A stretch of DNA of 20,130 nucleotides, taken from positions 1 to 20,130 of the forward strand of contig BAAFSQ010000185.1 in assembly GCA_054661495.1 (NCBI GenBank), in the 5' to 3' direction. Positions 2,628 through 20,130 of the stretch are shown here, piece after piece; positions within the stretch are counted from its first letter, which is position 1, and every line of letters begins with the position of its first letter. This stretch comes from Zygophlyctis sp. KS116. Lineage: Eukaryota > Fungi > Chytridiomycota. Below the pieces are notes generated by a model. It was given only the letters and a program-made list of their open reading frames with translations. It was not told the origin of the DNA and made no database searches. Position numbers and translations under genes: made by a program.

Positions 2628-2848
2628 GTCCGAGCAAGGTCCGAATGCATCCTTGAATGCATCCTTTAACTTTCTTTTGATTATTTACCGTACTAGGTCT
2701 AAAGACGAGAATAAGATCGAATGATATTATTATGTCAAAATTAAATATAACCAGCGGTCTTCATTTAACGTGGAGGACTTGGTCGCGACACGGAAATTTT
2801 TTTGGGTTATATTTTTTAATTATACATGAACTCCAACCAAGTAATTAA

Positions 2849-2859
2849 GGAGATGTAGT
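2849..2859 (+). other. Putative gypsy polypurine tract/LTR junction GGAGA|TGTAGT
   Basis: The identical 11-mer occurs on the minus strand at 3594-3604 and 13995-14005. It is preceded by a weak chromodomain-like relic (YYVK..EDL). Confidence 0.5.
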
Positions 2860-3593
2860 GTATAATTATTTTTAATTTTATCCTTATATTTCTAGCTTTG
2901 GATATAAAAGTTTAGTTGTAATTTGCGATGCTAGGTATCATTGACCTTTCCCATCAAAGACGTACAATCGTAAAAAGTGTAATAGAACATGCGACAAATT
3001 AAGATAATGCAAGGTATAAAACGCCAGCTATCGCCCGCTATCGAGAGGTACCGACTTACCAACTCCTGATTGGCCTATCTTGATTACATAGCAGCTAAAA
3101 CATTATTTTAAGTAGCAATCAAGAAATTTAACAAACCAAATGTCCATTGGACAAGGATTGACAAGAAGTTTGATAGATTAATTGACAAATAAACCAATTA
3201 TAATATAATATTTTTAATGAGAAATCAATGAAGTTGACCGTCAACCCGAGAAAAATGTTTCAACAAGATACAGAACAAGAATCAGCACAAGCTTAAAACA
3301 AATATTAAGTGTAAGAGCTGAAGGAAGAAGAATCAGTCTAATGACTGAAAGAAGCCAATCCCGACAACATAACCTTTGGCGAATCTCAAGAACATCAGGA
3401 TGTTGATAGTCGAATTATACTTGTTCCGGTCGGATGGACTATAACTTTGAAAACGGCTTATAAGTAAGCTAAAAGATATTCCTACTAAAAAAACAACTTT
3501 TATCCCTTTTATAATCTGCGGGTTTGAGTTTTTTTTGAAGTGTTCATGATTCACGATCGAAAAGCGAGAGTAATTTGAGAATTGAAAGTAAAT

Positions 3594-4639: not shown

Positions 4640-4960
4640 GGTATATAGAGTTACCTCATTATTATCCTTCCAAAAACCATAGACTATTTAATCAAAGAAG
4701 TCCGAGTCGACCATATCTACCATTGTATTTTTCCCCTATCGACCAAACCAACTTCCTCATCCTGCATTTCTTCAATTTTTTTCAATTTCAGGATTGTGGA
4801 CACACGCTTTGGACGAGTGGGCGGTGGTCCGGATAAGAGTTTTCTGGCCCTGTTGACAGCTAAGAAGTGTTTAAAAATTATGATATATACAGCATGTTGC
4901 TGGTCACTCCATAAGCTGACAATCGGGTTTGCATATTGGCAAAGTGATCTTTTATTTCCT
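4640..4960 (-). mobile_element. Second CryptonF-like N-terminal relic
   Basis: YANPIVSLWSDQQHA|31-nt intron 4890-4860|LSTGPENSYP, frameshift, PTRPKRVSTILKLKK..VDRGK. Same LW..Q / PR..V / DRG motif order as CryptonF and the 1883 relic. Confidence 0.65.
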
Positions 4961-5080
4961 CTAAAAATAAAATCATTTTGTTTTCTGTGACATAGTTTCA
5001 TAGCCTTTCTGTTTACAACATTCCTATCATTAAAATAATTAATAAATATATAATGAATTCTAATGCCTTGGGGTCATACA

Positions 5081-5879
5081 CTACTGAGCATTAACAACGG
5101 AGAAATGCTTCAGGTTGCTAATGGAGCAGAAACCTTTTTTAATTGACTTTATTCAATTAAAGGTATGCTTTTATTTAAAACTAAATGATTAGATGATAAT
5201 AAGTATAGGAATATGTATTTGAAATGTTTTGGAGGAGGAAAATTAAAAAATATTACCAAAACTAGAGGCGCTACAGAGGTGCCGCATGTAGCTTTAAATT
5301 TTATTGGTTGTGTACATCCAGAAACGTTAATTGAGTTTCTGAATATGCACGACAAAAACCACGACGGGTTTCTTGAAAGGTGCCGTCATAATATATAATA
5401 TGTAGATTTATCCTCATTTTTTTTATTAGGGTTAGGTTATTAACTTTTAAAGAATAGAATTTTGTTAAAAGAGGGAGAATTGGAAAAGGTTAGAATTAAG
5501 TTGATAAACTCTTTTAAATACAACAGAAGAATTAGAAACTTATTCAATAAATCTCCCGGTAGTTCTGTAGCAATGATCGAAAGGTAATGTAAAAATTTTA
5601 ATTCAAAGAATCATGTATTTGAAATAATTGGAAATTCTGTTTCAGACTTTTTAAGACAAATTTTCTGGGTTAGGGGTGTGGTTACATCATGACACAATAT
5701 TGAAAATGTTTCAACGTATTCAATTACATAAATTTGGGGATGTGCGATTAATATCATCCTCGTCTAATAGAAATATTGGAAAAGAATTAATCGTTTTAAC
5801 AAAAAGAAGTTTGGTGGACATTTTGCAGACAGCTCAAGGTCGAGCGAGATTTCGCCTATTTAGATTGAATAACCCTTAA
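5081..5879 (+). pseudogene. Intron-containing DUF3987-like (YfjI-type ATPase) gene relic, copy 1
   Basis: Splicing 5163-5192 and 5380-5405 gives LLSINNGEMLQVANGAETFFN*LYSIKDDNKYRNMYLKCFGGGKLKNITKTRGATEVPHVALNFIGCVHPETLIEFL..HDGFLERFIL. This matches the DUF3987 order: Walker-B DE (decayed to NG), G..(Q/H)P, DGFL.RF. No Walker A is present. Confidence 0.7.
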
Positions 5880-5929
5880 ACTTTTTTGAGTTTTTGCGTT
5901 AAATAGTGTACACAAGTTAAAAATGATGA

Positions 5930-6570
5930 ACAAATGATCAATTCAAGAACTGGGAAGATAAACAAACTTTGTAATACCTGCTTACGCATGTAGAGGATAT
6001 ATTATTCACCAAATTTACTATGACTCAAAGAATTGCCTTTATAATTGAAAACGACAAAGATTTTGATTTAAAAGGACTTTTCAAAGAACTGAACTAACCC
6101 TTCCCCGTACTATTTTTAAGCAATTAAAGTCAACCATGGATTTGGAAGATCTATTAAACCTCTCTTTATCTCAGATTGCTTATATTTGGAAAAGAAAAAA
6201 TGGCAATCTATTGAAAGGTACCATAGCTTGTACTGGACTGCTCGAAAATTCATCCGTTATGGATTTATTGAATTTAGATATTACTCAAGGTATTTTTGTT
6301 TACTTATGGAAGAATATGTTATTTTGAATACTGTATATAAAAATTTAAAAGCAGAGTATGGTATTGTTGATTCTACTTTTATAACGAATCAAGAAGTATT
6401 TGAAGTTTTCGTATACATACTTCTATCGGATGGGGAAGGTCATCCAGTCAGTTATCTTTTCAAAAGCAGAAATAGTAGTGAAGGAGATAGAAAGAATGCA
6501 CTTATTAGTTGGTATCTTATCATGATTATGTAATAAGTAGGTTTAATTCTTGAAATAAAACCTGAAATTT
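5930..6570 (+). mobile_element. Mutator/MULE-like DDE transposase relic
   Basis: SRTGKINKLCNTC. A 23-nt intron (6290-6312) joins ORFs 6136 and 6186 in frame: SQIAYIW..IVDSTFITNQEVFEVF..DGEGHPVSYL (first catalytic D motif, D.T..TN..G.P). Further intron at 6512-6540. Confidence 0.78.
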
Positions 6571-6572
6571 AT

Positions 6573-7050
6573 CCGAATTTCAATGCTCTTTTCAATTTAA
6601 AACGCCAAGATTCAGTTGATGAAGTTTACTCAGGAGACCTATCTTAGCTTCGTAGGACAGTACGTACTTAGACTGTCTGCCATTTTACATATTATAGAGG
6701 AGGTATAATTAATAACATTTACGAAGAGGCTTTAAACTCTATGATTGAAAAAGGATTAGTTTTAGCGCAGTGTTTTATGAACATGAAGTTTCCTTTTAAT
6801 TATTAAATTTTTACAGAATAATTATGAAAGACGATTGTCTTAAAACATTTATCAGTTATTCATTTGAAGAAGAATCCGAACAAATTGAAGCGCTGGCAAT
6901 AAATCCTACTCCAGAAATAGTTTCTTTGGTTCAGAGGTTGTTAAAATTGATTTAATAATAGGATCTTATCCAAAGTTACAAACTAATTGAAGTAGAAAAA
7001 TTTTGAAATATTGCGGTCAAAAATTCTACTTCAAATCGTAATTTTGGAAA
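6573..7050 (+). pseudogene. DUF3987-like gene relic, copy 2 (C-terminal part)
   Basis: YSGDLS*LR, frameshift, GQYVLRLSAILHII (K...LRLA..LH pattern). SEQIEALAINPTPEIVSLVQR|IL aligns with copy 1 TEELETYSINxPGSSVAMIER|IM, with a 25-nt phase-2 intron at the same position. Confidence 0.6.
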
Positions 7051-7149
7051 AGAAATATATATATTGAAAAAATATATATCATCTTATTTAATCTCTACTG
7101 CTCAAGGGTGAGCCAGATTTAATCTATTTCGATTAAATAGAGATTTACT

Positions 7150-7760
7150 TGATAGATCTTTTGATTAAAATTTACTAAGAATAGTGAAACAGAAACATGA
7201 TTTTGCCCGCAAAAGAATGTAAGAATTTTTAACTTCATTCTGCATAATGCCATAATCCAATTCGTTTCCTTCTTTACAATTTACATAACAAAGTGGATTC
7301 TATCTGCATGACTAAAAGTTATATTTAAAGCCGGAGAACCATTATTAATAATTGCTGATTTAACTTCATGCCTGCGGCATTTTTTGTGGGTTTTACAAAA
7401 TCTAGCATGTAAAGAAATTACACGAGTATGATATAAAAAATCATCGGCTGTATTTGAATGGGTTTTATTTCCTAACTTTGCTTATAACGATGTACGAATT
7501 TCTTCCAAAGTGATATGATTGATGTTATCCAGTGACATCGATTTAACTTTAAATGAAATTTTGGTGAACAATAGAATCATAAGCGTGAAATATGAAGTTG
7601 ATATCTCTACGGAATATTGGATTATCAATTTCTAGTAAATATTTTATAGTCTCCTCGTAAGTGGTTTTGGACGCCCTTTTTTATTAAAAGATTGTCCTAT
7701 AGCCAGTGGAATAACCTAATAATTGTGGGAATGCATGCGTATAAAAATGTTATGATTGAT
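7150..7760 (-). mobile_element. Helentron/Helitron2-type Rep N-terminal (Helitron_like_N) relic
   Basis: Minus strand: AFPQL..G..GRPKPLT..ETIKYLLEIDNPIFRRDINFIFHAYDSI..RRHEVKSAIINNGSPALNITFSHAD..QNHVSVSLF. Confidence 0.8.
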
Positions 7761-7929: not shown

Positions 7930-9130
7930 CATGATGACTGCAATTCTTCTAAACTTTTGCCTACATCGATTGTTGAAGGCTTTCCTAATGAGCATTCTGC
8001 TATTAAATCTTGTGATTCCTCGTCCACTATTGTTGTAGTACACTGATCAAAATCATCAAGGAATTCATTTTCTGGATATTGATTTATAATATCATGAGAT
8101 AGCTGTACGTTCTAATAACCGGGACAGTAGTTTTTTAACCACTGAAGCCACATTTCAACTTTCGACTTTGAATTACTAAAATATTTATTGAAGGTAGCTA
8201 GCGATCAATGTTAATTGGGAACTGTACCAGGTACTTCTAGTACTGAATTTTCAGGAAAAGTAGAAGTTCTGATTTTAGTTATTTCTTCCAAGGGGGCTTT
8301 ATCAGATTTTTGGCTTTTGCTAGAGTTTTCATCTGGAAAAAATGGGGTTTAGGGTATGTTATAAAAGCAACATCCTTGAAAACGAGAAATGAGTTAAATC
8401 TTCCTTCAGGGTTTACATCAATCACATTGTACCCTTTGGATTCCTTGGAAATACCAACAAAGCGAAGAAGAGATTTTGAGCGCCTAGTAAGTATGTAAGT
8501 ATGAAGAAGCTCCCCTGCACGCGATAAGGGAGAGCCGCTTTCAGGTGGAAAAGAAATTCTTGTACACTCAAGACATGTCTTACAGTCTGAAAAAACATCA
8601 TTAAAAGCGATCTTTTGCGAAATGAGGAGTTTCTTAGTAGCTTGGTTGTTCAGATGACCGAATAAATTATGCCAATTATGTCGACAACATGTTGCAGCAG
8701 GTCTTCTTTCCACAACGTAGAGTCCATTTATCTGACTACAGTTCAATATTGATTCCTTTTTTTCTTTTTGAATAAACTGCTCTACTCCAATTGTTCTCTG
8801 AATTTTAATATAGTTACCTTTATAAAATATAGAGACAAAGTTTTCATTAGCAAGGCTAGAGACAAAGATGATTCCACCATACGATTGTTACACGTTCCGT
8901 CAATTATTGAGGCCATTGTAACATCTTTGTTTGCCTCTGCTTTTTCTCCTGCATACTCCTTTGGCAATTTTGACAGTAGGCGCTAAATGGTCAACTTTAA
9001 TACTTCAGTTGAGCCTCCTAGGGCAGCTACAAATGATCTTTCAATTAATTTGTTTGATTCTTGTGCACTTGTATTTATATCTTCCTCAGTAGATACCGTC
9101 ATTGGTGCAGATAACTTGTAGAGTAATACA
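7930..9130 (-). mobile_element. Ty1/copia relic: gag remnant, GAG-pre-integrase, deleted integrase, SH3-like tail
   Basis: GLYV..WHNLFGHLN..CKTC..GELLHT joined almost directly to FVGISKESKGY..KDVAF. Confidence 0.85.
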
Positions 9131-16105: not shown

Positions 16106-17978
16106 ATGGATACAAGCTCTGGAGTTGCCCTCTCAAAGAAGAGTTACAGGAATTAAATGTACTCATAATAGCAAAAACTAATGAACGATCCGCTCTTAAG
16201 AATCTCAGATCAGCTGATAGTGATACTCCTTAGCCCCAAATCGAAGTGTTGAAAGAGGAAATAAACGAGTTACTTCAAGAACATAGTCTACTAAAGAAAA
16301 CTTTATTATCTGTATCCTTTGATGCAGAGAGTTCTGGGAACACAGAAAAAAGGGGCCAGAAATCCAAGTTACCCAGATTACCTATGTTCAGAGGTACTGG
16401 ATCATTCAATTTTAATGAGCCCTGAATTGTTAGAGACCGTAACGGCATTATTGATTGCACATGAAGTGGACGAGTCAAGATGGCCTACAGCAATACTACA
16501 ACCTCACATGAATGGTATCGGGAAACATGTTTAGATCAATCGGATTTTCAAGAGTTCAAGGTGATATTCATCAGTCGCTTCGAGTTGTTTGGCCAAAAGA
16601 TGGCGTGGGTTAGAAAATTATTAGGCTTGCGTCAAGGCGAAAGGAGTGTGCAAGAATATGCAGACGAATTCAAAACTCTCATGGCTAGAGTATCCGCAAA
16701 ATGCAAGGATCCTTGGATATATGAGATGTTTATCTATGGTCTAGCTAGTGATGTGCAGTCTCGAGTTGATAATGCTCGAGCTGTATTGACGAGAAGTCAG
16801 AAAGATAAAGAAGAAGAAATTTCGGTACGTGACATAATTGAATTGGCTATTTCACTGGAATTAAACAAGATGGAAGGTGGATATAAGTCACAGACTAAGA
16901 CACTTCCGCACCAGATGCATCAAGCCTGAAAGGAAAGAGTGGTGATTGTCTGGCTTGCAAATATGCTGGAATCAAAACACCTTGGTCTAAAACACATTGG
17001 GATACATGTGTGCACAAAAAGAAAAATGGAGAATAACAAAATGAATTTGATTGATGATCTCATGAAAGAACTATACAATGTATAGCAATTAGAGGCTAGT
17101 GAACCAAGTCAGCTACCCATCATGCAAGTAGTAGTGAATGGCATGAATGTAGAGGCTCTTGTTGACTCTGGATCAAATATTTAGTTAGGTTTACCCTTCG
17201 CAGTAGATGTTTTAGACGTCAAGTACAATGTCATCATTGGTTATAATATTTTCGAAAAGCTGGGAATCTTACTAGGGTTAGTTCCAAAATTCCAGAAACA
17301 AATGTCACTGAGTCCCTGGTTATAACTTATTAAAAGATGAAGTGAAAAGTCTTATACAAGAGAATCAAGCAATCAGCCCACTCGAGAAGTGTCCTCATCC
17401 ATTGGCCAAATTAACGTTTGAATTTGACAAGAGTTTTCATTTTTATCGCAAGGTCAATTACGTCAAACAAACGGAGGTAGCAGTCTTACTTGAAGCGAGA
17501 TTAGATGAAGACCCAAATATCTTTCCCTTAGTTACAGTTCCAAAGAAGGATGGAGGCATCAGAGTGTGTGTGGATCTTCGGAGTCTAAATGAAGCCGTTA
17601 AATCGGATCTAACCCTATATTACTCAGTTGGTATACCCAATTATAAAGAAAAAGGCTCAAGAGGCACAGGATAAAACTGCCAAGCAACATTCTAATGGAA
17701 AGCTGATGATATCGCCAGAAAAATTCCCTTCAGGTTCATTAGTCATGGTAAAGGATGACACAAGAGCAAATAAAACAGATGCTCCTTATGAAGGTCCACT
17801 TTTGGTAATAAGACGAAATAACGGGGGTGCATATATTTTAAAAGGAAAAGATGGTTCTGAATATCAAACAGTGGCAAATCAAATGAAATTAATTAATCAA
17901 ACAGAAAATGTCAAAATTTTTTTAGATCCTTCATTAAATGAAATTCAAAAAATTATAGCAAAAAAGACAAGGAATTAG
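16106..17978 (+). mobile_element. Ty3/gypsy element with large internal deletions
   Basis: gag LRQGERSVQEYADEF..FIYGL, protease ALVDSGSN, RT start VPKKDGGIRVCVDLRSLN, then a jump to integrase tail GSLVMVKD..PYEGP..GAYIL and a possible chromodomain start EIQKII. Confidence 0.92.
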
Positions 17979-18289
17979 TATTCCTCTGGTTATGTTCAAA
18001 GGCTTAAAGGAACCTCAACGTATACATCAAAGACGGGAAACTTCCGGCCACAGGGAAGGAATTGCAAAGTTTTTGTAGCAAGTTCAGAGAAAGTAGCTGA
18101 TAGGCGAAGATCAAAAGTCAAACTCCGCTTGAATATAAAAGGATCAAAGACGCGTAGCGCACCTTAGAGGAATTAAAGTCAATTAATTCTCTAAGACACT
18201 CTGAGAAAAAAAGGCCAACAACCGTTAACTGTTACATCAACCAAGGATCTTATTTACAAAAAATTGAATTTTTCATTGCTGATATACAT

Positions 18290-20130
18290 ATACCGGTTAT
18301 TTTGGGTATACCCTGGGTTTCTGCAGTTCATATCACTTAAATTGATTGGTGTAGAGTTCTTTGACGGGGAACAATTACATTCATTGACTGGCGAAAAGTC
18401 TGAATTTATTGGAAAACACTCTATTACTATCTTCCCTTGATTTTGAGGATTGCTGTAAAAGTAGTGCATTTGAATCATGGGGAAATTGTTCAATTGCAGA
18501 GTTAGAAGCATGGGGAGAAGTTTCACAGGACACTAAAAGCGACGAAGATCCCGAATTGACAGAGTTATTATTATCATTTGAAGATATATTTGATAAACCA
18601 GCTATGCCCCCGCCTTCCCGGGAAGAAGACCATGAAATTCACCTCCTCCCAGGGTCAAAACCTCCCCCGATCAGAGGTATTGGGAGGCTGAGTGAGGATC
18701 AGCTGGCTCTTTTAAAATCGACAATTACGGAATTGTTGGATAAGGGCTTTATACGTCCCAGCACTAGCCCTTTTAGCGATGAGAGTTTTAGGATGTGCGT
18801 TGACTATAGGGGACTCAATTTAATCACAATCAAGAACAAAGCTCCCTTACCAAATCTCAATGAATTGCGAGATAGAGTCAGAGACGGCCGAATCTTCAGT
18901 AAAATGGACCTCAGAGATGGTTTTTATAATATCCTAGACCGGGAAGAAGATCGCTTTAAAACCGCCTTCCGGACAAGATATGGACACTTTGAATTCAATG
19001 TATTGCCCATGGGATTAACAAACTCACCTGCAACCATGCAGTCGACAATGAATCGGATTTTTGGAAAATTTTATGATTTGTGACTCTTAGTTTATTTGGA
19101 TGATTTATTAGTATACTCTGAAAACATATCCAATCATCTTAATCATCTTAGGATAGTATTTACGCTCTTGCGGGAGAACAAATTATTTCTCAAAATTATT
19201 TCTCAAACGAAACAAATGTCAATTCCTCAAGTCATCTGTTAAGTTTTGTAGTCATATTCTGTCGCAAGAGGGAGTAGCGCTAAATGTTCAGAAGGTGCCA
19301 GGTCTTGATAGTATACCCCCAAGTTCAGCGAAGGAGGTGCAGCAGTTTTTAGGACTGGTCAATTGGTTTCGAGCCTTTATCCCTTTGTGTGGTGAGATCT
19401 ACCACAAACCATTAGTGTGGTTACAATCCCAGCGATTGTTATCAGGTAGGCAAATTCGATGGGTGATAAAGCTGCAAGAGTTTAATCTGAAAATCGAATA
19501 TTTGCCTGGAAAACTGAATTCGGTAGCGGATTATCTTAGCCGACAGCCCAGTCTCTCGCCAAAGTGTCATTATTGCCAAGCCCGAATTGTCTCCTCTGAT
19601 CCTCATGCTAGGGAGATAAGTATAGCTGAAGGAAATCTATTTTCGGTAGCTGTAGTGGATTTAGACGGTGAACCCAAAGCCCAAACTCATTTTTTATCGA
19701 ATTTCCATGATCGATCTCATCGAGGTATAAATCGTACGTTGAAATCCTTGCGTAGATATTATACTTGGCCAGATATGTATAAATCCGTTAAAGAATATGT
19801 CGAGACCTGCGATGTTTGTCAACGATCAAAAGGTCGAAATTTTAAGCCGTATGGAAAGCTTCTTTCCTTCCCGATTCCTTCTCGCAGGTTTAGTGTCATT
19901 GGCATGGATTGGTTCTTTCTACCGAAGTCTTCCACTCAGGAGGATTGTGTCTTAATCATTGTCGATTATCTAACTAAACTGGTTTAGCTAATTCCCTGTA
20001 GATCTACTAACAGTTCGTCAACTGTGGCTAATTTATTCAAAGTGCATTGGCATGATAAAGGCTTTGGCCTTCCTAGCGTAATAGTTTCGGATCGAGACTC
20101 CAAATTAACCAGTAAATTTTGGGTCAAATT
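18290..20130 (+). mobile_element. Ty3/gypsy pol relic running off the window end
   Basis: VILGIPW, RMCVDYRGLN, KTAFRTRYGHFEFNVLPMGLTNSP, YLDD after a stop at 19081, FLGLVNWFR, ADYLSR, H..H..CDVC, IGMDW, VSDRDSK. Most of RNase H is deleted and there are several stops and frameshifts. Confidence 0.96.

Follow-up and report, generated by a model that had tools for sequence, protein, structure and literature searches.

Eukaryotic transposons of the DDE type are thought to need nothing beyond their transposase and the factors of the host. Dedicated AAA+ partners of the transposase are a hallmark of prokaryotic elements, among them Mu, IS21, Tn7 and the CRISPR-associated transposons (CAST). What, then, is to be made of a eukaryotic DDE transposon in which a gene for an AAA+ protein stands beside that of the transposase? 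Here we describe such a case in the chytrid fungus Zygophlyctis sp. KS116. The DNA analysed, hereafter the window, is a stretch of 20,130 nt, contig C185 (BAAFSQ010000185.1) of a 12.7-Mb assembly in 1175 contigs. Positions 5083–7168 of the window hold what we take, with a probability of roughly 0.9, to be two dead fragments, relics A and B, of a family of Mutator-like elements (MULEs) that has added a gene of the DUF3987 family to its transposase gene.

DUF3987 proteins are known as superfamily-6, MCM-related replicative helicases of phages, which are ‘curiously, not in eukaryotic viruses’ (PMC4889955). They stand in for the known helicases beside the primases of mobile elements (PMC5862659), and a bacterial member, a PriCT–DUF3987 protein, is a 5′–3′ DNA helicase (PMC11724360). 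In the literature on DUF3987 we found nothing on eukaryotes or on transposons. As to Mutator elements, a eukaryote-wide survey gives mudrB, mutB, vanB/C and one unknown open reading frame as second genes and mentions no helicase or ATPase (PMC6446971); an arthropod survey of the same elements mentions neither. Our search of the literature, Repbase and Dfam being outside its scope, yielded no account of a Mutator element that carries a helicase, AAA+ or MCM-like gene. Judged by its sequences, the family described here is not a new superfamily; it is a member of the Mutator superfamily with a captured DUF3987 AAA+ gene, a pairing that is apparently undescribed. The copies thus fall inside a described element at the level of the superfamily, but not at the level of the family.

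Organization of the intact element

What did this element look like before it decayed? Three full-length insertions (C138, C513 and C431; table 1) are bounded by inverted repeats and target duplications. In all three the helicase-like gene and the MULE transposase gene lie within one unit of 4.63–4.67 kb, enclosed by a single inverted-repeat pair and a single target duplication. The repeats begin 6–9 nt inside the ends set by the target duplications. Despite their differing inverted repeats, the three full-length subfamilies share the letters GGGTTT at the 3′ terminus (L016:7763-7769, L013:4843-4848 and, on the reverse strand, L015:241-247). A preliminary description of the window, made from its letters, had proposed a search for termini, target duplications and a linked gene, and all three were found: inverted repeats, duplications of 8–10 bp and an adjoining MULE transposase. 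The intact element is predicted to consist of a DUF3987-type AAA+ ATPase/helicase gene of about 500 codons with 9–10 spliceosomal introns of 19–30 nt, followed on the same strand by the gene for a MULE DDE transposase.

Could the transposase be a chance neighbour? The order helicase-like gene then MULE transposase, on one strand and about 2 kb apart, is found at eight loci (C138, C431, C513, C484, C128, C598, C379 and the window), and it is shared by subfamilies that are only 37–69% identical in protein. This constancy of order, strand and spacing, together with the three insertions in which one pair of repeats and one duplication enclose both genes, makes it very improbable that the DUF3987 gene defines an unclassified eukaryotic mobile element of its own, next to which a transposase has come to lie by chance nested insertion. 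Relic B and the copies in C236, C340 and C704 do stand without an adjoining transposase, and elsewhere DUF3987 marks the replication modules of phages, satellites and plasmids (PMC4889955, PMC5862659). However, the copies without a transposase are truncated or stop at contig ends, and genes for a primase, polymerase, integrase or capsid are absent from the element. The preliminary description had favoured an unclassified kind of element; since the gene lies directly upstream of a same-strand MULE transposase in every copy long enough to judge, we abandon that proposal for the Mutator assignment.

The PF13148 (DUF3987) profile matches at 12 places in the genome, the best of them scoring 38.7 bits, and a single helicase exon matches at 21 places; there are some 20 copies, most of them broken. 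Copies in C576, C363 and C380, two of which sit at contig ends, carry ends 98–100% identical to those of C138, which suggests recent activity. On the PF10551 MULE profile the stretch of C484 homologous to the transposase piece of the window scores 34 bits, C513 scores 27.4–27.9 bits (cut-off 27.6) and a single exon of C138 scores 23.8 bits. As to the zinc finger expected downstream of the DDE core, the SWIM profile scores 12.9 bits (E 0.084), below the cut-off. Other MULE matches with long open frames, missed by the transposase query, lie at C89:1269-1535 and C149:17297-17572. Since these two contigs have no helicase match, the genome also holds Mutator lineages that lack the helicase-like gene.

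A motif block (TTGATTGGT.AAAA ... ACGTCAT) is conserved in three subfamilies 40–100 nt upstream of the helicase ATG (L016:3230-3300, L014 and L015). It resembles a CCAAT box with a TGACG-type site and may be the promoter of the element.

The relics in the window

Relic A is one collinear copy of the C513 element, as established by blastn against the other contigs of the assembly (table 1); tblastn of the family exons onto the window gives E values down to 1e-59. By this alignment it is a copy of the C513 subfamily from which the 5′ end, about 480 bp of the helicase-like gene and about 350 bp of the transposase gene are missing. An unrelated repeat abuts it, and since the copies of that repeat in C189 and C131 run on past the switch point, the junction 5082/5083 is a breakpoint and not an end of the element. 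Within exon 4 a CGA>TGA change has created a stop at 5144–5146. The deletion of about 480 bp, with its scar at 5416–5444, takes out the distal half of the ATPase domain. In the last helicase exon there are a stop, an insertion of 16 bp and a deletion of 12 bp; the exon terminates with a TAA at 5877–5879.

Between the two helicase pieces lies a piece of the MULE transposase that the preliminary description had overlooked. It comprises a Cys-rich N-terminal region (5905–6095) and the start of the DDE core (6303–6512), the latter homologous to the first part of the MULE domain (tblastn E 1e-14 to 1e-16), of which the rest is missing. It has been shortened by three deletions (23, 37 and about 295 bp) and is cut off at 6582, everything beyond the first third of the DDE core being lost.

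Relic B belongs to a different subfamily, with about 46% protein identity to relic A in the C-terminal part that they share. Its first part (6592–6702) is 92% identical to C340:107-1 and 91% identical to C270:1-107, while 6664–7168 is collinear with the C704 copy at 67–75% identity, up to the natural stop at 7166–7168. It contains at least six stops and at least two frameshifts. In a tblastn search of the window with the family sequences no transposase remnant was found 3′ of relic B.

Both gene copies had been noticed in the preliminary description, and both are real. The start of the first is corrected to 5083, inside exon 4, whereas the boundaries given for the second (6573–7050) were wrong, this copy running from 6592 to its stop codon at 7168. 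Carrying stops and internal deletions and truncated at both ends, relics A and B have no function and are incapable of acting. They were joined through deletion or rearrangement inside a transposon nest.

The neighbourhood of the relics is a nest that also contains remnants of gypsy-like, copia-like and gag-like retroelements, in an AT-rich window with a GC content of 29–41%. Judged from the translations of open reading frames only, a gypsy-like series of gag, protease, reverse transcriptase and integrase occupies 16480–19987 (+), a minus-strand frame at 8279–8746 resembles the zinc-finger region of copia-type integrases and a gag-like frame lies at 1220–1540 (−).

Table 1. Features of the two relics in the window, their alignment to the C513 copy and the three full-length insertions. 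Positions without a prefix are those of the window.
Feature	Position	Strand	Evidence or remarks
Unrelated repeat abutting relic A	4652-5082	.	79-98% identity to C189:14467-15004 and C131:11423-11472
Relic A: tail of helicase exon 4 (Walker B region), 5′-truncated within the exon	5083-5162	+	blastn to C513 (L013:906 onward) 92%; tblastn
Relic A: 30-nt GT-AG intron, phase 1	5163-5192	+	GT..AG at the aligned site in all four subfamily copies, 24-30 nt
Relic A: helicase exon 5, open	5193-5379	+	Pfam DUF3987 match; 64-68% identity to exon 5 of C138, C431 and C484
Relic A: 26-nt GT-AG intron	5380-5405	+	position conserved, lengths 24-29 nt
Relic A: exon 6 stub and scar of ~480-bp internal deletion	5406-5444	+	L013 positions 1239-1726 missing in global alignment
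Relic A: decayed helicase C-terminal exon, small indels	5445-5583	+	blastn, tblastn and global alignment to C513
Relic A: 25-nt GT-AG intron, phase 2	5584-5608	+	in C513 and the window; missing at the aligned site in C138, C484 and C431
Relic A: last helicase exon (C-terminal, winged-helix-like region)	5609-5879	+	75% amino-acid identity to L013:1853-2152
Relic A: MULE transposase, 5′ half	5905-6582	+	tblastn 87-93% amino-acid identity to L013:2180-3153
Relic A aligned to L013 (C513) 906-1247	5083-5424		92% identity
Relic A aligned to L013 (C513) 1727-2430	5445-6093		80% identity
Relic A aligned to L013 (C513) 2726-3204	6103-6582		93.5% identity
9-nt filler between the relics	6583-6591	.	matches neither reference
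Relic B: 3′ 40% of the helicase gene, other subfamily	6592-7168	+	C340/C270 identity, C704 collinearity; tblastn E 9e-21
Relic B: 29-nt intron	6788-6816	+
Relic B: 25-nt intron	6937-6961	+
C138 element	L016:3140-7769		4630 bp (C138:20139-24769); inverted repeat 22 nt, 95%; target duplication AAAATTTA (8 bp)
C513 element	L013		~4.67 kb (C513:179-4848); inverted repeat 23 nt, 100%; target duplication CACCAATCC (9 bp)
C431 element	L015		~4.65 kb (C431:241-4888); inverted repeat 32 nt, 94%; target duplication GTTGTGGATA (10 bp)

The helicase-like gene

To what family does the gene upstream of the transposase belong? In C138 three successive exons match PF13148 collinearly, at positions 7–63, 165–226 and 263–332 of 364 (27.5, 24.1 and 21.4 bits), and the window itself matches at 5213–5395 (profile positions 172–227 of 364; E 4.7e-6, 26.5 bits, cut-off 27). 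A profile of exon 4 was built from 11 copies (its rows including L025:1615-1965) and compared with 1.84 billion representative proteins, giving 68 matches at E<=1e-3. Nine of these, with E values of about 1e-10 or below, are short metagenomic fragments of the family's own kin, one of them nearly identical to the C236 copy. Of the distant matches scanned, 41 of 42 are Pfam DUF3987 proteins, some of which are fused to Prim-Pol, PriCT, toprim, a DnaG-type zinc ribbon or a DnaB N-domain. The named distant relatives are cyanobacterial, for example toprim–DUF3987 proteins. Aligned by hhalign to 13 bacterial DUF3987 members, the exon-4 profile gave a probability of 99.7% (E 3.5e-25), with the family-specific P-loop in register. 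The DUF3987 character of the peptides, claimed in the preliminary description, is thereby upheld. An NCBIfam search of the window peptides found nothing, and the exon-4 profile compared with the sequences of the PDB yielded only a chance match, to ParM.

The Walker A motif reads G-K/R-K-G-T/S-K/R-K-S/T-P; its key residues are invariant in the 11 copies and it aligns to the bacterial G-R-S-G-T-x-K-S-P. The exon that carries it has been lost from both relics of the window. At the Walker B position relic A reads Asn-Gly (5120–5125), a further change from the Asn-Glu of the family considered below.

An AlphaFold model was made of exon 4 through exon 5 of the C513 copy (L029:622-1218), a contiguous in-frame stretch that includes the translated 30-nt intron. 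Its mean predicted local distance difference test score (pLDDT) is 85.8 and its predicted template-modelling score (pTM) 0.82. The top Foldseek matches are weak (E 1e-3 to 2e-2) and comprise MCM2/3/5, archaeal MCM, MCM8/9, ClpX, papillomavirus E1 and the helicase region of NrS-1. An exhaustive structural comparison returned only AAA+ ATPases, at Z 6.3–8.3, with ORC4, Cdc6, TnsC, MCM5, MuB, DnaA and Clp tied. The model thus supports an AAA+ fold, and its scores do not single out the MCM clade. For the C-terminal region, the part retained by both relics of the window, the model has a pLDDT of 49; it has no Pfam match, and its helix-helix-strand-strand pattern is no more than suggestive of a winged helix.

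Close kin of the helicase exon are also present on two environmental contigs, L053 (JGI 3300045541, 1787 bp, E 1e-54) and L060 (Ga0315905_10282838, 1598 bp, E 2e-55, 65% identity). Contigs of this kind (e.g. 1.6 kb) are too short to show a transposase. The second gene called on L053 begins 35 nt after the first, a layout that suggests the same structure of tiny introns. By these matches, the samples from which L053 and L060 derive contain the host or relatives of it.

Introns

The preliminary description had removed introns of 30 and 26 nt from the first copy and read the peptides YLKCFGGG, TKTRG, ALNFIGCVHP, DGFLER and FIL; a three-frame reading reproduces them all. It had also placed a 25-nt phase-2 intron at the same point in both copies, and we find the same: 5584–5608 and 6937–6961 split an Arg codon after VAMIE and VSLVQ, respectively.

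How general is this structure? We compared four copies (C138, C513, C484 and C431), from subfamilies 49–69% identical in protein. Seven intron positions have GT..AG in all four, with lengths that vary independently between 19 and 30 nt, and the fraction of invariant sites is 14% in the interiors of the introns versus 34% in the exons. In C138 an open frame extends from the ATG (L016:3336) as far as the stop (L016:5096) once nine introns of 23–29 nt are skipped. This check followed codon phase and coordinates only; the sequence searches used single exons. In AT-rich DNA an unconstrained search for GT-AG paths also carries open frames beyond the true stop, and for this reason only the intron positions conserved between subfamilies were counted. 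In the C484 copy the first intron (L014:4585-4692, reverse strand) has lost its GT donor, which reads GA, and is read through in frame. A ciliate genetic code was considered as the source of the stops and rejected: read with the standard code, the exons of intact copies contain no stop, and the stops observed fall within introns or belong to copies that have decayed.

Not all introns are shared. That of 25 nt is present in C513 (L013:1860-1884) and in both relics and absent at the aligned codon from C138, C484 and C431. It is probably also present in C704, C128 and C525, where the protein match splits at that codon; C400 and C403 match across the codon in one piece and without a stop. C138 and C484, in turn, share an intron at L016:4929-4952 that C513 and C431 lack. 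As judged from these alignments, introns have been gained or lost inside a transposon gene.

Might the pieces instead be pseudogenes of a host (domesticated) helicase family, or contamination of bacterial or phage origin? The nearest detectable relatives beyond the kin group are indeed bacterial, the cyanobacterial toprim–DUF3987 proteins among them. Yet the gene has introns of spliceosomal type at conserved positions, the GC content is 30%, and the contig that holds the relics also holds eukaryotic retroelements. The copies, some 20 in number and mostly broken, are flanked by target duplications, and tblastn of exons 4 and 5 against 50,697 phage records gave no match at E 0.01. We regard this explanation as having a negligible probability. 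In describing a gene that is intronised, multi-copy (at about 20 places), diverged, decayed and part of a mobile element and not of the host gene set, the preliminary description was correct.

Selection on the two genes

Between subfamilies the proportion of nonsynonymous differences (pN) in exon 4 is 0.15–0.33 and that of synonymous differences (pS) 0.72–0.96, which is saturated; where the synonymous rate could be computed, the ratio of nonsynonymous to synonymous rates (dN/dS) is 0.08–0.18. Among five copies the helicase-like protein is more conserved than the transposase (49–69% against 37–56% identity). Low pN against saturated pS and the greater conservation of the helicase-like protein argue for long purifying selection on its gene, which exists only inside the transposon.

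Discussion

If the relics of the window are dead, what would the protein do in an intact copy? There the helicase-like protein would be a partner that selection has maintained beside the transposase; most likely it would act as an oligomeric DNA motor, driven by ATP, and aid transposition at the level of DNA. An element without primase, polymerase or integrase cannot replicate itself, and the motor most likely serves DDE transposition. It could unwind or remodel the DNA of the donor ends or of the target, or link the gap to replication or repair by the host. The logic would be comparable to that of the prokaryotic pairs of DDE transposase and AAA+ protein, MuA/MuB, IstA/IstB and TnsB/TnsC. We propose this assistance at donor ends, at the target or in the repair or replication of the gap tentatively, at slightly less than even odds.

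The gene probably has an ancient origin in a mobile element of bacteria or phages and would have acquired its introns after the transfer. A Mutator lineage may in this way have captured a DUF3987 AAA+ motor as an obligatory partner of its DDE transposase. The result would be the first eukaryotic machine of the MuA/MuB, IstA/IstB or TnsB/TnsC type, or else a replication-coupled step; this proposal, too, we judge to fall just short of an even chance.

Must the protein be a helicase at all? It may instead be an ATP-dependent DNA-binding switch like MuB, TnsC or IstB, which chooses or marks the target DNA, a reading that would leave the identity of the relics unaffected and that we regard as the main alternative, though less likely than not. 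It is consistent with the replacement of the Walker B Asp by Asn in every copy, the Lys of Walker A, the Glu of Walker B and the conserved Gly..Arg motif being retained, and with the lack of a primase partner. The structural matches include TnsC (Z 7.9, 7.3 and 6.6) and MuB (Z 6.7), and the pairing of a DDE transposase with an AAA+ regulator recurs in prokaryotes. The sequence family, however, is DUF3987, of which a tested member unwinds DNA (PMC11724360), and the scores of TnsC and MuB are tied with those of ORC, Cdc6, MCM and Clp, less than 1 Z apart, so that they do not discriminate.

Several points weigh against the account of a Mutator family equipped with a DNA motor. The fragments in the window retain no termini; both ends are lost and a target duplication is unreadable there, and for this reason their membership of the MULE family rests on internal homology. 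In the full-length insertions the outermost 6–9 nt of the element ends are not complementary, the repeats being sub-terminal only. The Asn-Glu of Walker B, where the bacterial proteins have Asp-Glu, occurs in each of the 11 copies and in the kin from metagenomes, which leaves ATP hydrolysis and true helicase activity in doubt. Unlike most DUF3987 contexts, the 4.6-kb element shows no primase or polymerase domain, either in the exons or in the rest of its length. Pairwise identities of the helicase-like protein and of the transposase correlate weakly (r 0.39, 10 pairs), so strict co-descent cannot be demonstrated and recombination between elements is possible. Splicing and expression are deduced from the comparison of sequences, and the part of the protein in transposition is a proposal.

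If the proposal is true, a Mutator family in which purifying selection maintains such a motor would offer a tractable system for learning what eukaryotic transposition gains from an ATP-driven DNA motor. It would likewise document the capture of a prokaryotic gene by a eukaryotic transposon, and it would show the gain or loss of introns within a transposon gene. The relics of the window show the decay of copies, at least two subfamilies old enough to have diverged to about 46% protein identity, and a subfamily-restricted intron.

Comparison with known systems

How does the element compare with the systems that it most resembles? With the DUF3987 (PF13148) helicases from phages and from the mobile elements of bacteria and archaea, such as the PriCT–DUF3987 protein AgaPH, dns of phage N4 and the primase–helicase fusions, its protein shares a collinear match to the whole-domain profile and the AAA+ fold. 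The motifs in common are the Walker A G-R/K-x-G-T-x-K-S-P, T-x-E-G/A-L, Gly..Arg-Phe and K-x-x-G-x-x-L-R-I-A-G, and a small C-terminal domain stands where the DUF3987 family has its winged helix. The gene of the element differs in residing in a eukaryotic nuclear genome, in its 9–10 tiny introns, in having a DDE transposase as partner and no primase or polymerase, and in the Asn of Walker B; outside its own kin it is detectable by profiles only (E 1e-8 or weaker).

As a transposon the element resembles MuDR (mudrA/mudrB), Mutyl (mutA/mutB) and Hiun (vanA/B/C), with which it shares a MULE DDE transposase, duplications of 8–10 bp, terminal or sub-terminal repeats and a retained second gene. The second genes of those elements, in contrast, encode lineage-specific proteins without an ATPase or helicase domain.

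In the company of a DDE transposase and an AAA+ ATPase within one element it is like MuA/MuB of phage Mu, IstA/IstB of IS21 and TnsB/TnsC of Tn7 and CAST, and both TnsC and MuB are among the structural matches of the C513 model. It differs from these in that its AAA+ clade is, by sequence, DUF3987- or MCM-like and not one of the IstB, MuB or TnsC families, in that the ATPase gene lies upstream of that of the transposase, and in being known here from sequence alone. The Helitrons (Rep/Hel), finally, are likewise eukaryotic DNA transposons that encode a helicase-type ATPase; theirs, however, is a Pif1-like superfamily-1 helicase fused to an HUH nuclease, and they lack both a target duplication and a DDE transposase.

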